The notes beneath the pieces were generated by a model. The model saw only the letters and a program-made list of their open reading frames with translations. It did not search any database and was not told the origin of the DNA. From Fonticula alba ATCC 38817 (lineage: Eukaryota; Protista; Nucleariida), in the NCBI GenBank assembly GCA_000388065.2, contig KB932212.1: a DNA stretch of 24,460 bases; one strand, 5' to 3'. Shown here one piece after another: positions 1 through 9,852 of the stretch; within the stretch, counting starts at the first letter, position 1; the number at the start of each line of letters is the position of its first letter. Position numbers and translations under genes: made by a program.

Positions 1-292
1 TCTCTCGCTCTCTCGCTCTCCCGGTGCGCTTATCCAACTTTTTTTTCTCGGCCCCTCCCAGACATCTCCCTGGGGTAAGCATATGATAATGTATTTCCCC
101 CGGCACCGGCAAATGCGTGCGCCGTGGTGTTATTCCGCCCCCTCGCCCGGCTCTTCCGCCCTTCATCCATGCCGAGGAATGTACAGGAGAGCAAGGCGAG
201 GATGGGGCAAGATGGAGGAGCAAATCCAGGAGAAGGGCAGCCCCTCGCGGCCGGACACAGCGCCAACATGGCGAGCGCCCCGGTAGCGAGGC

Positions 293-2388
293 CTACCCTT
301 CGTCCTCATCGGCACTCAGCACAAGGGTGCTGCTGTGGTCGGAGCCCGGGGAGGAGTGGCTCATCGGCCGAAAGCTCGCCAGGAAGTAGGTTTTCATGTC
401 ACCCTTCCCCTTGATGGAGATCTTGCCCCGGGGTTCGAAGGTCCATTCGCCGCCACCACATTCGGCCGGCGTGTCAATCAGCCCCCTGCGCACGGCCTCT
501 GTGCAATGCACTCGCCCTGGGAGACTGTACGACTCCATGCGACTGGCCGTGTTCACGGTGTCGCCCCAGACATCGAAGATGTGAAAGCGGCCGGGAATAA
601 CCCCGCACACCACCTCGCCCCGGTGCATGCCGATGCGAAAGGTTAGCTGGCGTGTTTGCTGCGAGAAATCGGCCTCCCTGACGCTCGGGCGATGGCCCGC
701 TCGTGGGGACCGCCCGGCGGTTCTGCCCTGCGATCCTTGGGGCTGCTTGTCACGGCGGAGGTGCGCCACGCGGAAGATGAACGGCTGCTCCACCATGGAC
801 AGGGCCAAGCGAGCCAGATCGCACAAGCCACGATCGGAGTTGGCCCGGTCCTCCGGGCAGATGGCTTCATGCTGGTGCTGCTGCTGCTGCTGCTGCAGGA
901 GGTCCGGCGAGTCGTCGACCGACATGAAGGAGCTCTCCCAGGTGGAGGCACCCTGTCGCTGGTGCTGCTGCTGGTGCTGCTGTTGCGGCCGCAGGTCCGC
1001 CGGCGCCGAGTCCTGTGTCGGGCCGCGGGTCGGTCCAAATGCCTCTGGTGGCGATGCCTGGAAGGGGGTCGCACGGACCGAAACTTGATGGTCGCTGTCC
1101 AGCGAGAAGGCCACAAACTTCGTGTGACTATCGGCCGCCCCGCCCGCGGGAGGGCCAGCTTTTGCCATGCTGCCAGCTGCCAGCGGCGTCGAGTGCGATG
1201 TCGCGACAAACACCTTACTGGCAGCCTTCTGGAGCGGGGCTTCCGGGGCCGAGGCCATTACTGGCACCCGGTCGGCGACGGTGGCATCGCCGCCGCCATG
1301 GCCATCAGCGACCATGGCCGGGAAAGCAGGGGGGCCATCCACCGCGAGGCCAGTGTCCGACGGGAGACCCTGCGGCGGCGGCGGCGGCGGCGGCGACGAC
1401 GGCGGCGATGCCTCCAGCGACGAGGTAGACGACATTGTGGCCATATTGGAGAGAGGGGAGGGGAAGTGCGGCCGGCGCCTGGCCGGCCGAGCCCCAGCCT
1501 GAAGTCGAACAACGGTTGGATGCTGCTCGCAGCCGGGCGTGTACGCGGATGCCCGAGCCCATTCACAGCAGGCGTGGGGATGTCAGTGTCGCCGAGTGGC
1601 CCAGACCCGGGGGAGATGACTCCGGCTCGCGCGACAAACCGCAGCACGGGAGCCTCATCCTGTGTCTGCGCCTACATATACATATATGTGCATGTGTGTG
1701 CGTGTGTGTGTGTGTTGCCAAATGCTGGCATTCAATTGTTTTGAAAGGGAGGGACTCTTGTTGCGGTGCAGCCGCACACGCGACAGCCAGGATGGCCACC
1801 ACCGGCAAAAGGAGCAAAGCTCAGGGGCAAGGGAGAGAGCGGGAAAGCCCGGGGAAAGCCGCGAGCGAAAAGGCCAGAAAGAGGGTGTAGAGCCACGGAC
1901 AAGATGTGGCATTGCCCGCCCCCCCGTGCACCCCCCCCACCGGGCTGCTGCGAGAAAGAGGCACTCCTACACATGCACGCATCGCAAATGGCAAGGGAGA
2001 CAATGGACATGCGGATGGCGGAAAGTGGGAAGGGAAGAGGAAAAGAAAGAGCACGAAGAAGAAGAAGACACGAACCATGGGTGATGCCGATGCGTGGGGC
2101 TGGGCTGGCTGCGAGCCATCGTAACCCTGGGCCGGCTGACCAGCGCCAAGGGGTGCCCCTAGCAGGGAAGACTCCCCCAGCTCCGAGGAAGCCCGCTGCC
2201 GTGGACCGCCGGCGCCTTCGGTGGTGACATTCACCGAGGGGTCCGACCCGGAAGTCAGCACCTGGGAGTCATTCATCATGTGGCAGGATTCCGAGGAGGC
2301 AAGCCACCCGGCTCCGGCCAGCGAGTGGGTGCTACCTGCTTGGCCGGGGGCCATGGAGATGGCGGCATTCCCGGTCTCCGGGGGGGCT

Positions 2389-2444
<56 letters not shown>

Positions 2445-5400
2445 TGCTGCTGCTGCTGCTGCTGTTGTTGACGCCCCCGTCGTCAGTCCTCGCACATGCT
2501 CTGGCAAGTTCGCCGGGTGCACCTGGCCGGCCTGCAGCCCGCGCGCTGGCGACCCGAGAGACGGCGAGGAAAGGGTCCTTGCTGGGACCGGAGGGGGGGG
2601 CACGACGCCGGTGCTGGCCTGACGAAGGTGCGACGCCGAGAAGGGGACACTGCGAGTCCAGAAGTTCGACACGGCGGGCGACCCCGACGCGGCCGGGTCC
2701 AAAGCCGGACGGGAAGGCACGGTCGCGGCCCGCAGCGATGGCCGGGGCCGCACCGCAGCCAGCAACTCCACCGACCCGGTGGATGAGAAGGACGACAAGG
2801 AGGAGGACGGCAGTGAAGACAGGGCCGGCATCGGGCCGACAGCGGCCGAGGCCTGGCCAGGCTCCCCGGCGAACAGGTCGACCACCACATCCAGGATGCC
2901 ACTGACCGAATGGGATTCGGTGGTGCTCGGGTGGAAGGTGGCCGTGCTCGAGTTGGTCGACAGGTACGGCGAATCCGAGGAGGGATTGCGGCTGGTCGAG
3001 GAGAAGTCCGACGAGGAGGATGGTGTCCCGGAGGAGGGGAGGTCCGAGGAGAAGGAGGCCGATCGCGAGGTGGGGCCGGCATTCTCCGCCACAAGGCCGG
3101 CTGGTGTGCCGGCAGGGGACCCGGGAAAGGAAGGGGCACCGGGCAGGTCAGGGAGATCCGCCGGATATGGGGGCGGGGTGGTGGAGAGGAACAAAGGAAA
3201 AAAAAATGAAGGGAGAAAAAAATCAACACCCCCCGCGCACATTGCACGATAATCGGCGTGGTGGCCGAGACGGCATCCCCGCCGCCCAAGCGCGAGGTGG
3301 GGCGTCCCGGCGGATGTCCCAGTGTCGGTATGAGCGTCACCTCCTCCTCGCTGGTCCGGTCGTCCAGGGCCGAGGTGCTGTCGCTGGTCGGCGGGGGCTC
3401 CAAAGCCCGCGAGGGGGAGATGGTCATGGAGGAGGTCCGCGACAGGGGGCTCGACGAGGTGTAATGCACCAGAATGTAGTCCGTGCTCTCGGTGCCATCT
3501 GGCCGCACCCGGCCGATCTTCTGCCGATGGGCAACCTGCGACGACCGCGAAGGGGGGCCGCCACTGGCGGCCGCCTGCCGGCCGCCAGTGGCCGATCCTC
3601 GCCGGTGCCGGGGGGAACTCGCACCGGGGCCCAGCACGGCCGCCGAAGTGAGCCCCCGAGCGGACCGGACAGTGCGCGAAAGGAGTGGCACCCCGGCCAC
3701 CAGCATGAAGGCATCGCCGATGGCCTTGACCTTCTCCACCTCGTTCATGTCCTTCATGCGGCGCTCAATCTCATCGCTCAGGGCACGAAGGACCGCCACC
3801 ACGGCCACCGGGGTCATGGTGCTGGAGATCTCCACAAAGCCCACCACATCCATGAAGAGCACCGTCACCAGGGGCACACGGTCGATCAGGGCCCGGTCGC
3901 TGCCGGCGCCGATCTTCAGGCGCCGGCCCAGGATCGATGGCGGGATCATCTCCGTCAGGATGGCCCGGGTGCGCTTGTTGGCGCGGACCAAATCCCGGCC
4001 ATAGGAAATGGTGGTCACCCGCAGCGAGTGCACATACATCATGAGGGCGATGATGGAGATGGCCACCATGCCCGGGGCCAGGAGGATGGTCGTCACATCG
4101 ATGTGCGGATTGACGACTTGCACCAGCCACCGCGGCAGCAGCCCAAACCAGGGGGTATGTTGCAGCTGGAGCTGCGGCATGATGGGCAGCGATCGCTCAG
4201 CCGGCGTGGTCGCTGGGGGCGCGAGCCGCGCCAGCGGCACCGCCGGCCGTAATCCATCGAAGTAGATGCTCGGCCAGCACCGGGCCACGGGTTTGGCCGG
4301 GTCATCGGCCCCGCCGAAGTCCCCGCAGGATGACCGGCCAAAGTGCATCCCGAGCTCCGTGCTGGGGCATTGCCCCAGGGACAGGTCCATCTCCAAAGCA
4401 AGGGCCGCCTTGTCATCCTGGTATTGGTCGGCCGTGCGCGGGCGCATGTCCAGCCGGGTGGCCCGGTACAGAGTGGCCGCCAGGAGGTTGGTCATCGGGC
4501 AGAGGGCGCGCTGGCGAAGGGCCACATAGGCCAGCAAATTCAGGAGCAGGATCAGCACCACCGGCAGCCGCGATGCCACTCGCCGGGCCGGAACCAGCGA
4601 CAGGGCGAAGCAAGACAGCGGGAAGAGGTAGGCCGTCATGAAGCCCGGGTAAATGTCGATCTCCGGCGAGCCGGTGTCAGCAACGGCCCCGGTCCCGCGC
4701 AGGGGGCAGGAGAAAATCTGCAACACCACATGCTGCGACAGGACATACACCGTGCCCAGCCACCGGAGGAGACGCCGAGTTGGGCGCTCGATGCGCACGC
4801 GCAGGGTCGTCAGCAGGGCCAAATTCCCGAGGGCCACAAGCGCATGCGGCCACTTGCCACACACCATCAGCAGGACGATGATGGCCAGGCAGCAAAGGAT
4901 GGTGGTATTCAGGTGCAGGCGAATGAGCGGCAAATTCCGCCGCGACAGAGCCGCCAAGCCGAGCGACTCGGCCGTGGCCAATGCCAGCCGCCGACAGAGG
5001 CGCCATGTGCGCCGGAGCACGCGCCGAGCCCGACGCCGAAGCACCATCATCACCGACCGTGGCCGGTGGGTGTGCCGGTGCTGGTGCCGGTGGAAGCGCC
5101 GGTGCCGGAGGCACATCAGCAGCGGAACCAGCGTCCGATACTGCGGGGAAAGACGCTCGAACAGCAGCCACCCGAGCAGGGCCACCCGCGACCCGAGCTC
5201 CAGCACCTCCTGCAGCCACATCAGCGCGCACATGGCTGCCAGATGGCCAAGCAGCAGGCCCACCACCAGCGGCGCGAGGGCCAGCTGCACGGGCGGCAGC
5301 CCGCTGGCCGGGTGGGCCCACCACCAGCTGCTCACAAGCTGGAATACCTGCCACAGGGAGAGCTCCATGTGGGCCGCCGCCGCCGCCGCCGCCGCCGCCG

Positions 5401-8311
5401 GAGAGGACGGCCCCGGAGATGCTGCGCCAGGGCCCGGCGGCAGGGGAGCCCCTTGGTCGGTGCCGGCGCCCGCGCGAGGCACCTCATCGACCAAGGCACA
5501 GTCCACGCCCGGCAAGCAAAAGGGACAGAAGAAGCCGACGCAATGCCGGTGCATGGTGGCCCCGGCGGCCGATGGCCAAGTCAACAGCCGCGCCATCACC
5601 GACACATGCCCGAGCAATGCGCGCCACGCCAGCCACCGCAGCAGGACCCACAGCCAGTCTCGTGCATCGGTGGACACCGACCGGAACAGGCGAAAGTCGA
5701 AGGGCGCCGGCGAGCCATCCGCATTGAGGGGCAGCAGTCGGCCATCCAGGCCGATGGTCGGCAGCAATGTCCTCGAAGCGGCCGACAGCCTGCACATCGA
5801 CCCCGGCACAGGGCCCAGCCCATGCCGGGCGCCGGGCAAAGCCGGCAGGCTACTGGTGGATGAGGTGCGCGAGGGAGCCGATGCCGAGGCCACCGAGGGG
5901 GGCGCTGCGCCAGGGCGGCCCCCCCGCGCGAGGCGGGCCAGCCGGGCCAGCGAGCCGGTCGATCGGGCGCCGACGATGCCGAACGTTGCCGGGGCCGACC
6001 GGGGCCGCGCCGCCAGCAACTCGACCGGGCTGCTCGGGCCGGGCCTGCCACCCCTGCCAGTGCCAAGGCTGGATGCCTGCCATGAAGACATGCGCCTCAG
6101 GGGGTCGCGCGCATGGCGGCCGCCCGCCGAGCGACCGAAGGGCAGCCCCCCCGGCGCCGCCAAGCCGTCGAGACTCTGGCTGGCGCTGCTGCTGGCGCTG
6201 CTGCTACTGCTGCTGCTGCTGCTGCTTCCCACATGCGCACTCGAGCCATAGAGGGAGGTGTCCTCCTCGGACCCGCAGTCGACCCCGGTGGAGGACTGGA
6301 GCTCGGGCCAGGTGTTCAGGTAGTCCATGCCCCGGTGGAAGAACAGGCGATTGCCGAGGACCGTTGACCGGGGGGGATGGCGCAGGCAGCGAGACAGACA
6401 GGCCTCCGAGCAGGAGGAGTGGTGTGGGAGCTGGCTCCCCACAACGACAGACCGCCGCCGCATGGTCGGGTGCTTCATGCAGGGGGCATACCGGTCAAAG
6501 TGGGCAGCCGGAGCCACCATGGCCGGGGTACGGGGGTGCCGGCCAGCGGCCGCCTGGCGGGGAGCCAGCCTCCGAACCGAATCGGAATCGCTGTTGCTGG
6601 TGGCACTCGAGTGCGACATGAAGCTGGCATCCGACGAGGAGTCCAGCCCGACCGACATGTCGGACCCGGAATCCATGGTCCAGCCGCTGTCGGAATCGGA
6701 AAGATGCCTGGCCGGTCCGGCCGGGCAGGCCAGCTTGCTGGCTCGGGTCAGGGCCAGGGCAATGGTGTAATCCGGGTCGATGACAAACTGGTGGCGTGTG
6801 GGGCCCGGTGTTGCGACTCCCCGGCTGTCGCCTGTGGCCGGGGCGGGCCGCGCTGGCAGATTGCCCCCGAGCCGGTCCATCAGGCTGAGCTGCATGAAGT
6901 GCAAGGCCTTCGGACAGGAGAGGGCACTCTCCGAGAAGGAGGATTTCTGTCTCCGTGGCCGAAACCCGGCGGCCGGGGGATTGGACAGGCCGGCGTCCGA
7001 GGTGGCGCCGGGGCCGGGCGGCTCCGGGGCCGGAGGCGCTGAAGGGGCCTGGTCCAGGACCAAATCCGAGGCCGGGCCCGAGGCCGCGACGGGCACTTGG
7101 CACGCGGCTGCACACGGGGCAGGGGAGGGAAGGAAAGCACGACAGATGAGAAGCCGGCAGACGAGGGAAGGGACACGCGCGCGAGGGAAGACCGTACACG
7201 AGGGCTGAGGATCGATCGGGAGGGCCGTTGGCCGGCAGTCCGGAGCGCGGGGACAGGCGCAGGAGGCGGAGCTACTCCGAGCCGCCGGGGTCGCCGGGAG
7301 GCCCGACGAGAGGGAGGAGCTGCTCGACTGGACATATATGGACGGGCAATTGCGCGACAGGCGCAGGTAGCCGGTGCTGAAGGAGCAGGCCCCCGGGGTG
7401 TTGGCCGGCGATCCGGGAGACTGACCACCGGGGCCGAGAGCCGACCCCGGCAGCGGCGGCAGGATCGGCTCGCGGTTGGGCGAATGGAGGATGGCCGCGC
7501 GTGCGGCCTGGGCCCGCTCATGCTGGCGTTGCTGGCGGAGAGCAGCCGAGGCAGATGTGGCCTCCCCTGCCCAGATCCCCCCGCGGCCGAGAGGGCGTCT
7601 ATGGGTGGTTCGCATGGATGCTGCTGCGGGGGAGACCCCCACTCCGGGATCCCGGGGCCGAGCCGTGAGCAGGGCGGGCGGGGGCTGGGCAGTGGTCCCA
7701 TCCGCGGGGCGCTCCTCGTCCGAGCTATCGGCCGGGCGCGGCGCGGGGTCATCCAATGTGGCCACCATGGCATCGCCCGGGGCCTGGTGCCGGGCTAGGT
7801 CCGTGGGCGAGTCCAATGCCAGTGGCGGTCGCGGCCGAGGCAATGCCAGCCTTCCCGACGGCGAGGCGTCGGGCTGTGCATTGAAGTGCATCTGCTTGGA
7901 CCGGTAGTTGCGCTTGATGGCGAAGCGCCGCAACGAAGGCGACTTGCTGATGCTGCGCGATGGCGAGGCAAGAACCCCCGGGGAGGTGCTGGGCTCCAGG
8001 CCGGGGGGAGACCCGACCACCGGCGGGCGGACCACCCTGCTGGAGGTCGGGCGTGGGGCAACGGCCGCCGGAGAGCCCGGCTGCCGGGTTGCCGCCTGGC
8101 GAATGTCATCGGCAGGGGAGAGCGGCGGCGGGGGCGGCGTGACGAGCGACGAGAAGGGCGGCGGGGGTGGGGCATTTGCGCGCCGCTGGGAGGCAGTTGG
8201 CGCCTTGCCCGCGTCAAGTCCAGACTTGTCCTCCGCCTGCTGGGGGGTGCCATCCTTGGTGCACGGCTGCCGGGGGAGGGTGAAGCCTTGGTGGCCGGGT
8301 CGTTTGGACAT
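293..8311 (-). CDS. Membrane-bound class III nucleotidyl cyclase, predicted adenylyl cyclase, ~2,430-2,470 aa, at least 3 exons
   Basis: Exon 8311..3241 (from MSKRPGHQ), intron 3240..3101 (GTGCGC...CTGAC...CAG, phase 1, frame restored), exon 3100..2076, then a junction near 2075 to 1499-1660 that I cannot resolve, and a last exon ending at TAG 295..293. Motifs: helical linker RANKRTRAILTEMIPPS, VTVLFMDVVGF (Asp 3850-3848), EKVKAIGDAFMLVAGVP (Lys 3727-3725, Asp 3715-3713), LCDLARLALSM, FRIGMHRGEVVCGVI, FDVWGDTVNTASRMES (Asp 574-572, Asn 553-551, Arg 541-539), GKISIKGKGDMKTYFL. Several hydrophobic segments lie between ~5660 and 4030. The start is uncertain: a phase-0 upstream exon 8695..8627 spliced to an AG acceptor before 8386 is possible. 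Confidence 0.9.
380..835 (-). other. C-terminal half of the cyclase catalytic domain (alpha3 to the last strands)
   Basis: LCDLARLALSM...FRIGMHRGEVVCGVIPGRFHIFDVWGDTVNTASRMESYSLPGRVHCTE...GKISIKGKGDMKTYFL in ORF 293..1444. Confidence 0.93.
2385..2462 (-). repeat. Trinucleotide repeat encoding a 26-residue poly-Ala run inside the cyclase insert
   Basis: The minus strand reads (GCA)6(GCG)18 GCA GCC in the frame of exon 3100..2076. Confidence 0.9.
3686..3880 (-). other. N-terminal half of the cyclase catalytic domain (beta1 to beta3, both metal-binding Asp and the substrate Lys)
   Basis: DRVPLVTVLFMDVVGFVEISSTMTPVAVVAVLRALSDEIERRMKDMNEVEKVKAIGDAFMLVAGVP matches the class III cyclase pattern. 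Confidence 0.92.
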
Positions 8312-8741
8312 TCTCGCCGGCGCGCGGGGGTATCGGCTTTTCCCCCCTTGAGGAGGCGACGCAGGGGAGGAGGGGGGGATGTGTATCTGCGAGCGGGTGT
8401 GTATGTGGAGAAGGAACAAGAGAGAGAGAGAGGAAAGGGGAGGGGGGCGGAAGGGGCAGGTGCGCGAGTGTCTGGCTATGTGTGTGTGCGTGCGTGCGTG
8501 CGTGCAAAATGGAGAGGCAAGTGAGAGGGTGCAGGCGATAGGGAGGGGGAGAGGCTATCATGTGCAGGGGAACCGGCGGGGTTCCCGGGGGTACGGGGGC
8601 CACAGAAAAGTGCCCAGCACACGCACGCCACGCATGGGCCCCCTCCCCTCCGCCCCCTCTCGCCTTCCCCCGCCACGCGGCACCCAGGCGAGCATGGCAT
8701 GGGGCGCCCCAGAGAGGGAGAGATGGCCGACAGGGGGGCGG

Positions 8742-8743
<2 letters not shown>

Positions 8744-8811
<68 letters not shown>
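8744..8811. repeat. Poly-G tract (G36 A G31)
   Basis: Read directly. It lies in the divergent intergenic region between the cyclase and the HExxH gene. The exact length may be an assembly artefact. Confidence 0.85.
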
Positions 8812-8813
<2 letters not shown>

Positions 8814-9852
8814 GGGGAGGAAAAGGCAGCGGTCGCCCCGGCGCTAGTGGCCAGCTCTCTGCGTGGGCGAGGGACGCCCCCTTCCCCCCCCTCCCCCCTC
8901 GCAACATGGCGGCCAGATCTTGGGGCGATCGGTCGCCGCGGGGCCGGGGAGGGGTTGATCCACGATCCGCGCGAGGCTCCGGGAGGGGATTTATCCCCGG
9001 GCCAGTTCCCAAGCCCCCGGGCTGGGGGGCAAAGTTTGGGGCGATCGGCCGGGCCCCCCGAAGGCCTCGGGGAATAACAGTGGCTTCTTCTTTCCTGCCA
9101 GACGGCCACACGCGCCTGGGAGGGGGGGGGGGGGCGGGAGAACTTCACGTGTGGACCGGCCCTCGCCTGCACACCGGGGGCCCTGGCAGTGCGCCTCGCG
9201 CCGCACGACGTCGCCGTGCGGGCCACTCGACGCGCGCTGCGTGCAGACACGATACCGGCCTCGGCGGGGCCTGAACGTCCCGCCCCCACCCCCCCCCCCG
9301 CCGACGGCGCGAGAGGCTGGCTTGTGTCCATGCTGAGAGAATGGTTCTCATGGGGGGGGGGAAGAAAGCCCGTGTGGGCTGCTCCGCCTCGGTCCTTTTT
9401 TTTTTCGCCCTCCCTTGGCACGCCGCAGGCCGGGGCAGGAATGGGTCACTTTCGGCCCCGGTCCCCTCCCCGCGGCTTCCCCACGGGGAGACGGCCGGCA
9501 TGCCGCCCCGCCGCGCGCAGCTCATGGCGTCCCGGACTCCTCCAACGGACCAGTCGGCGCCGGCGTGATGTGGAAGCACGTGGGCGCCGGCGTGACACCC
9601 TATGCCGCTGCATGGTGCCCCCGGTCCGCCCGGGAGGGGGCGGGGGGCAGCCCTCGGCGTCGCAGGCATCCCCCCCGGTATTTGCGCCAGCCAGCCCCGG
9701 CGGTCTCCGCCCGCGGAGCGACTGCCAGCGCACACCCCGCTCCTTGCCTGCCCGCCCGTCCCCTCGCTCCCACCCCCCCCCCCCCCACAACCCCACACCC
9801 CCCGCCCCCCGCCCCACATCCACACCCCCTCCCCTGGCTCCGGACACGAAAC

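Follow-up and report, generated by a model that had tools for sequence, protein, structure and literature searches.

Introduction

The described systems closest to the gene reported here, a putative adenylyl cyclase gene on the minus strand of a 24,460-nucleotide (nt) stretch of the Fonticula alba ATCC 38817 genome (contig KB932212.1; the whole of this stretch is referred to as the window), are the mycobacterial cyclase Rv1625c/Cya and the membrane cyclases of mammals. Rv1625c/Cya (7yzi/7yzk, 5o5k, 4p2x) has in common with the predicted Fonticula protein a polytopic membrane anchor, a transducer helix, a single class IIIa domain and the full set of catalytic residues; however, it is ~440 amino acids (aa) long and its domain is contiguous, whereas the Fonticula protein would reach ~2,440 aa, with a low-complexity N-terminus of 920 aa and two inserts of 723 aa and 40 aa. 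The mammalian enzymes AC9, AC5 and AC8 (7pd4, 8sl3, 8buz) likewise belong to class IIIa, carry the same FDVWGDTVNTASRME-type motif and provide the best matches in the Protein Data Bank (PDB) to the C-terminal half of the Fonticula domain. In contrast to Fonticula, where one complete domain was found, mammalian membrane cyclases have two different domains per chain, which form a pseudo-heterodimer with one active site.

Additions to otherwise conserved folds have been described elsewhere. Low-complexity inserts are common in Plasmodium proteins, and the receptor cyclases of trypanosomes carry a ~36-aa 'delta-subdomain' between alpha3 and beta4. In Dictyostelium ACR, a 51-aa low-complexity insertion lies in the first beta-sheet of the HisC domain, and a 112-aa insertion lies in the receiver domain R2 (PMC3009899). 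These ACR inserts, of tens to ~100 residues, are located outside the cyclase fold, whereas the Fonticula insert interrupts the cyclase domain itself and, at 723 aa, is almost four times as large as that domain. A survey of the literature returned nothing specific on large inserts in cyclase domains or on Fonticula cyclases.

Our analysis indicates that the Fonticula gene departs from the usual contiguous catalytic domain of ~190 aa, the best gene model placing 723 aa after beta3 and ~40 aa after alpha3. According to this model, which we regard as likely, a single three-exon gene on the minus strand encodes a protein of ~2,440 aa whose cyclase domain is interrupted by the 723-aa insert.

A cyclase catalytic domain in two halves

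Searching the open reading frames (ORFs) one by one with the Pfam profile PF00211 (Guanylate_cyc; curated cut-off 21.9 bits) revealed two partial matches with the same orientation and order as in the profile. The N-terminal half matched profile positions 7-68 with 45.4 bits (window 3874-3686) and ended at MLVAGVP, and the C-terminal half matched positions 74-182 with 86.8 bits (window 829-377) and began at GLCDLARLALSM. The two matches are complementary, with ~5 profile positions missing between them, and the middle open stretch that separates them matched no Pfam family. An earlier reading of this DNA made from its letters alone (the sequence-only reading) had placed a split in the domain between MLVAGVP at ~3686 and a C-terminal half resuming at ~830, and had predicted two complementary partial profile matches; the match boundaries bear out the first claim and the matches themselves the second. 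The profile and the alignments also support its view that the break falls in the beta3-alpha3 connection of one class III cyclase domain.

Between them, the two halves retain all six canonical catalytic residues, in agreement with the same reading. The metal-binding Asp pair is present as the D of FMDVVGF and the D of IGDAF, both in invariant D columns of the alignment, and the base-recognizing pair is present as the K of EKVKAIGD in the N-terminal half and the D of FDVWGD in the C-terminal half. The transition-state Asn and Arg are found in DTVNTASRMES, in the nearly invariant columns N134 and R138. A Lys in beta2 and an Asp in beta5 set adenylyl specificity in Rv1625c and in mammalian C2 domains. 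With this residue set, the product should be a class IIIa adenylyl cyclase that is anchored in the membrane and has a single catalytic domain, and synthesis of cyclic AMP (cAMP) is predicted from knowledge of the family.

For the transducer helix together with the N-terminal half, the best PDB match was the mycobacterial cyclase Cya/Rv1625c (5o5k at 2.9e-13, also 7yzi), with the helix KRTRAILTEMIPPSIL aligned with residues 42-57 of 5o5k, and for the C-terminal half it was AC9 (7pd4) at 2.5e-25, followed by AC5, AC8 and Cya. Pfam found only one cyclase domain in the gene, and the order of membrane anchor, transducer helix and one catalytic domain is that of Rv1625c/Cya. A second insert of ~40 aa (~772-659), also anticipated by the sequence-only reading, was located by alignment between alpha3 and FRIGMH and is reflected in the C-terminal Pfam match, which takes 151 residues to cover 109 profile positions.

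Gene model and coding signal

The three long open stretches of the minus strand that hold the gene run, in order, from 8419 to 2483, from 3242 to 1821 and from 1444 to 293. Upstream of the cyclase domain, a simple hydropathy scan showed five clear peaks and several weaker ones, the last of which lies 50 residues ahead of the domain, compared with the six membrane helices per chain of Rv1625c/Cya-like cyclases, so that the helix count of the Fonticula protein is uncertain, and no recognizable domain was matched by Pfam in the first ~920 residues. The proposed features are as follows, in window coordinates and in the order of transcription.

3241..8311, minus strand: exon 1, a single open frame, with the putative start ATG at 8311
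5550-8311, minus strand: N-terminal low-complexity region of ~920 aa, rich in Ser, Ala, Pro and Arg, with clear codon periodicity
~5545-4030, minus strand: polytopic membrane region, from hydropathy peaks (residues ~923-1427 of exon 1)
~3990-3890, minus strand: cyclase-transducer helix, from alignment to 5o5k
3686..3886, minus strand: N-terminal half of the cyclase domain (beta1-alpha1-alpha2-beta2-beta3), from Pfam PF00211, ending in MLVAGVP
3241..3685, minus strand: insert part 1, comprising 148 codons and the opening base of the Ser codon that intron 1 splits, stop-free and in the frame of the N-terminal half
3101..3240, minus strand: proposed intron 1, 140 nt, phase 1, from a frame change, loss of periodicity and splice signals
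2076..3100, minus strand: exon 2, equal to insert part 2, 341 codons, rich in Ser, Pro and Ala, from third-position GC periodicity and an open frame
1526..2075, minus strand: proposed intron 2, 550 nt, phase 0 at both ends, without periodicity and with stops in all frames
827..1525, minus strand: insert part 3, 233 codons in an open frame, with poly-Pro and Gln/His (Q/H) runs
377..829, minus strand: C-terminal half of the cyclase domain (alpha3 to beta8), including the second insert, from Pfam PF00211 and alignments
293..376, minus strand: C-terminal tail and stop codon (295-293), from the ORF end

The two halves of the domain are separated by 2,859 nt, within which three open stretches occupy two reading-frame registers: 3685-3242 (148 codons), 3098-2076 (341 codons) and 1525-827 (233 codons). 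Joined in the model, the exonic lengths of 445, 1025 and 699 nt sum to 2,169 nt, or 723 aa, and remain stop-free between GVP and GLCDL, a measured size that falls within the 2.1-2.25 kb and 700-750 aa estimated at first sight of the sequence.

The coding character of the interval was assessed from GC content at the three codon positions (GC1, GC2 and GC3), with a chi-square test per segment, and from synonymous codon usage within amino acids. In the frame of the N-terminal half, GC3 was 0.78-0.93 from ~8300 down to ~3250, that is, along exon 1. The signal then moved to the frame of the middle stretch at ~3100-2080, vanished from 2075 to ~1500 and returned in the frame of the C-terminal half, weakly at 1475-1030 and strongly below 1025. 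Significant periodicity was found for insert part 1 (3685-3241; GC1/2/3 of 0.64/0.68/0.82, p 1e-3), for most of insert part 2 (3098-2500; GC3 of 0.84, p 2e-7) and for the end of insert part 3 (1057-869; p 1e-5), and in total it covered ~1.5 kb of the interval. Neither proposed intron showed codon periodicity (3240-3101, p 0.5; 2075-1499, with 0.58/0.61/0.59, p 0.8), and the latter segment contains stops in every frame. The codons preferred in the insert are those preferred in the membrane and catalytic parts of the same gene (TCG/TCC, GCC, ACC, GTG, CTG and CGG). In the codon-aligned antisense frame, third-position GC was only 0.34-0.6, indicating that a plus-strand gene is not the source of the signal. 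A log-odds codon model trained on the globular parts was also tried and gave the insert a poor score because its amino-acid composition differs; it was dropped in favor of GC3 periodicity and synonymous usage. Taken together, these patterns support an interval that is mostly coding-like exon and not one long intron. The sequence-only reading had described in-frame exon sequence between the halves, which is supported for most of the interval; two introns, of 140 and 550 nt, appear to lie within it.

The splice signals are consistent with this arrangement. Intron boundaries were placed from the frame changes alone, before donor and branch sequences were inspected. For intron 1, the donor GTGCGC at 3240 and a CAG acceptor enclose a sequence with a C+T content of 0.71, and a branch-like CTGAC at 3151-3147 is followed by its first AG 47 nt away, at 3102-3101. 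Its removal shifts the register from frame A, that of the N-terminal half, to frame B, that of the middle stretch, and splits one Ser codon; the frame change and the loss of periodicity fall exactly at this intron. Intron 2 has the donor GTTCGT at 2075 and a branch-like CTGAC at 1586-1582, with the first AG 57 nt away at 1527-1526, so that exon 3 would begin at 1525 in phase 0 and in the frame of the C-terminal half. In both introns the stretch between CTGAC and the acceptor is free of AG. The agreement of donor, branch motif, first AG and reading frame argues for one in-frame model, in which exon 2 (1025 nt) could not be skipped without loss of the frame. The least certain point is the 3' end of intron 2, where use of the AG at 1500-1499 or at 1413-1412 would leave the frame intact as well, and mini-exons within this intron (1966-1901 and others) are possible.

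Intron 2 also contains a CA/TG microsatellite at 1660-1720, and an Rfam search of the intron returned only a chance-level weak microRNA match at this CA repeat (E 0.21).

Composition of the insert

The 723-aa insert consists of 16.3% Ser, 15.4% Ala, 11.6% Pro, 8.4% Gly and 6.9% Thr, a composition nearly identical to that of the protein's first 920 residues (14.0% Ser, 13.4% Ala and 13.3% Pro). The richness in Ser, Pro and Ala and the poly-Ala, poly-Pro and poly-Gln runs that had been read from the letters are seen here as 29 consecutive Ala residues (~2389-2475), PPPPPPP (~1390-1370) and a Q/H tract (~1000-870). These runs are encoded by GCC, GCG and CAG-type repeats, the GCC repeat having been found by Tandem Repeats Finder (TRF).

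Exon 2 was unrecognized in a protein-language-model atlas (recognition 960). AlphaFold2 modeling of exon 2 alone gave a mean predicted local distance difference test (pLDDT) score of 40.7, with the poly-Ala run as the only helix, although a single-sequence model of this kind is weak evidence. The insert is probably disordered, judging from these predictions. Because its composition resembles that of the N-terminal region, its runs are triplet microsatellites, neither Pfam nor the language model recognized it, its pLDDT is low and no homologue shares it, the evidence points to a tolerated, generic low-complexity expansion rather than a regulatory module.

Insertion sites in related cyclases

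An exhaustive HMMER search with the C-terminal half returned 18,087 relatives, and loop lengths were compared in the 150 closest representatives together with two earlier matches. Pairing each N-terminal-half match with the next C-terminal-half match yielded 164 domain copies in these 152 proteins. The best relatives of the C-terminal half came from a euglenid, a myxobacterium, an ichthyosporean and a tick, along with short unnamed proteins; the unnamed proteins, of 340-480 aa and with one contiguous domain, showed 52-61% identity over this half. A homologue search with the membrane region and N-terminal half gave two distant matches only, one from Pythium and one an unnamed protein in ENA, and an exact database look-up of four ORF products gave no match.

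None of the 164 paired copies carried more than ~75 extra residues at the beta3-alpha3 loop. Relative to the spacing in the Fonticula domain itself, taken without the large insert, the largest excess was 34 residues and the median was −30, the latter because the Fonticula domain carries the second insert. Smaller additions were found at both of the positions used in Fonticula. The beta3-alpha3 loop has 45-75 extra residues in Chromosphaera perkinsii (P0005, both domains) and in Pythium insidiosum (P0001), located, as in Fonticula, exactly after the G-L/V-P end of beta3, and the alpha3-beta4 loop has 55-65 extra residues in two other homologues (P0130 and P0110). The presence of these additions in relatives indicates that both sites are natural insertion points. 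The 723-aa insert is ~10 times longer than any found in the 152 proteins.

Read evidence and alternative explanations

The available read runs consist of four from 2012, the kind of which was guessed, and twenty RNA runs from 2026 filed under another organism label. Run X1, from 2012 and of unknown kind, assembled into contigs totaling 11.4 Mb, four of which map to positions 1-4500 and none of which shows a splice joint there. One of these, covering 769-1401 in the region of insert part 3, is continuous and without a joint. X1 was taken as RNA only by guess and may be DNA, in which case its pattern says nothing about transcripts. If X1 is RNA, exon 3 is transcribed and is unspliced across 769-1401, and RNA also arises from the 3' part of intron 2, which could reflect intron retention or an internal transcript start using the ATG at 1444.

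Two candidates concerning this region were rejected. An extra in-frame intron at 1261-1058 (GTAATG...CAG) is spanned unbroken by an X1 contig. A non-coding RNA within intron 2, considered as the source of the X1 coverage there, found no backing in Rfam or in RNA folding (z-score −1.1).

Several observations weigh against a single gene with a 723-aa insert. Codon periodicity was not significant for 2379-2076 (GC3 of 0.74) or for 1498-1058, so that for ~250 of the 723 residues the support comes mainly from the open frame and splice logic, and up to ~250 could be intronic or differently structured. A donor-like hexamer, GTCCGC, is present at 3665, 21 nt after GVP. The RNA runs X12, X13 and X17 from 2026 had no reads on 1-4500 and are uninformative, leaving the single-mRNA model without RNA support. 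The X1 contigs cover 358-509, 769-1401 and 1519-1696 at a depth of 4-7 with none upstream of 1720, and the covered part at 1526-1696 falls inside the proposed intron 2, with a depth equal to that over exon 3. Finally, the HMMER search with the C-terminal half found no orthologue, identity reaching at most 61% and no protein of the Fonticula alba genome being among the matches. Because the X1 coverage of intron 2 is unexplained, our confidence that both domain halves lie on one mRNA is held back, and we infer a common transcript as quite likely but not assured.

Removal of most of the interval by splicing, whether in a single long intron or in several, is an unlikely alternative; it would leave a contiguous or short-looped domain and reduce the coding-like stretches to alternative or vestigial exons. 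This explanation draws on the donor-like sequence at 3665 and on the weakly periodic segments at 2379-2076 and 1498-1058; however, it would discard ~1.5 kb with codon periodicity and host-like synonymous usage in frames that the 140-nt intron joins exactly. In addition, a donor at 3665 would be in phase 2, and no branch-like motif with a phase-matching first AG was found between 1304 and 646. GTCCGC also occurs at 3988 and 493 within conserved domain codons, as well as seven times in coding-like sequence (3665 included), indicating that it is common by chance, and the introns seen here are of 140 and 550 nt, not 2.8 kb.

A different alternative accepts the insert and proposes that it is a selected regulatory module in the catalytic core, controlling dimerization or activity as a platform for phosphorylation, a tether or a condensate-forming region. 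The insert contains 17 S/T-P and 13 RxxS/T motifs, its open frame has been maintained across 723 codons, and removal of a C-terminal low-complexity region raised the activity of a Dictyostelium cyclase by 60% (PMC3009899). Against this, such motif counts are expected in any sequence rich in Ser and Pro, the composition is the same as that of the generic N-terminal low-complexity region, the microsatellite content points to slippage, and no conserved block, domain or relative of the insert was found. We consider selection for regulation improbable on this evidence.

Very improbable is the existence of two transcripts, in which an upstream gene stops after exon 2 and a downstream transcript, starting inside 2075-1526, uses the ATG at 1444 to make a 383-aa protein with only the C-terminal half of the fold (a split, decaying or trans-complementing gene): the confinement of X1 contigs to 358-1401 and 1519-1696 with none upstream of 1720, the good context of that ATG (aatATGg) after a pyrimidine-rich stretch and an X1 contig total of 11.4 Mb that would suit a transcriptome all fit this explanation, but X1 may be DNA, no function is known for half of a cyclase fold although every catalytic residue and a strong codon bias are preserved in both parts, a donor stands exactly where periodicity ends (2075) with a branch motif and first AG that restore the C-terminal-half frame in phase 0, and frame B, if read through as far as the stop at 1821, would add only a nonsense tail rich in C and T.

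Proposed explanation and significance

Under the single-gene model, the enzyme would have to pair as Rv1625c/Cya does. Because each chain has one domain with the full residue set, it is expected to form a homodimer with two active sites. Both insert positions are surface loops in which other eukaryotic cyclases carry extra residues as well, so that the two halves could assemble into the usual fold with the insert protruding from it. Its most likely origin is growth by replication slippage of GC-rich low-complexity sequence, a process that would also have given rise to the 920-aa N-terminal region. On this view the enzyme tolerates the insert without needing it, and a regulatory function, if there is one (phosphorylation at the 17 S/T-P sites, for instance), would be secondary.

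Should this model hold, the insert around which the 190-aa fold assembles is nearly four times as large as the fold, and the gene becomes a natural test case for the tolerance of a catalytic domain to loop expansion. There is also a consequence for annotation. Domain searches give two half-matches for such a protein, and cyclases of this kind may be missed or split in the catalogues of GC-rich protists. The gene represents no new kind of signaling system; it is an extreme case of the known low-complexity expansion habit of GC-rich genomes. Leaving aside the insert, which resembles the generic low-complexity sequence found in this genome, the enzyme is a single-domain membrane adenylyl cyclase of the ordinary type.

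A bolder and doubtful extension is that the beta3-alpha3 loop of Fonticula cyclases has become a site at which very long disordered modules dock, recurring in several paralogues and regulating the enzyme from within its fold, for instance through phosphorylation-dependent control of dimerization or through clustering. Such a role, if true, would be a mode of class III cyclase regulation not described elsewhere.

The surrounding window

Ten long ORFs of 255-496 aa, on both strands in the GC-rich segment 9148-21517, had no Pfam match at E values up to 0.01, and many of the long ORFs in such GC-rich sequence are probably antisense or out-of-frame artefacts. Searches for tRNA genes and Rfam families found none anywhere in the window. 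A run of ~79-88 G lies on the plus strand at 8733-8820 (poly-C on the gene strand), ~420 nt upstream of the putative cyclase start, and may be either a homopolymer belonging to the promoter region or an assembly-prone tract. GC content was 0.64-0.75 over most of the length of the window, and between 21000 and 22500 it drops to 0.48-0.50, compared with 0.59-0.75 elsewhere.

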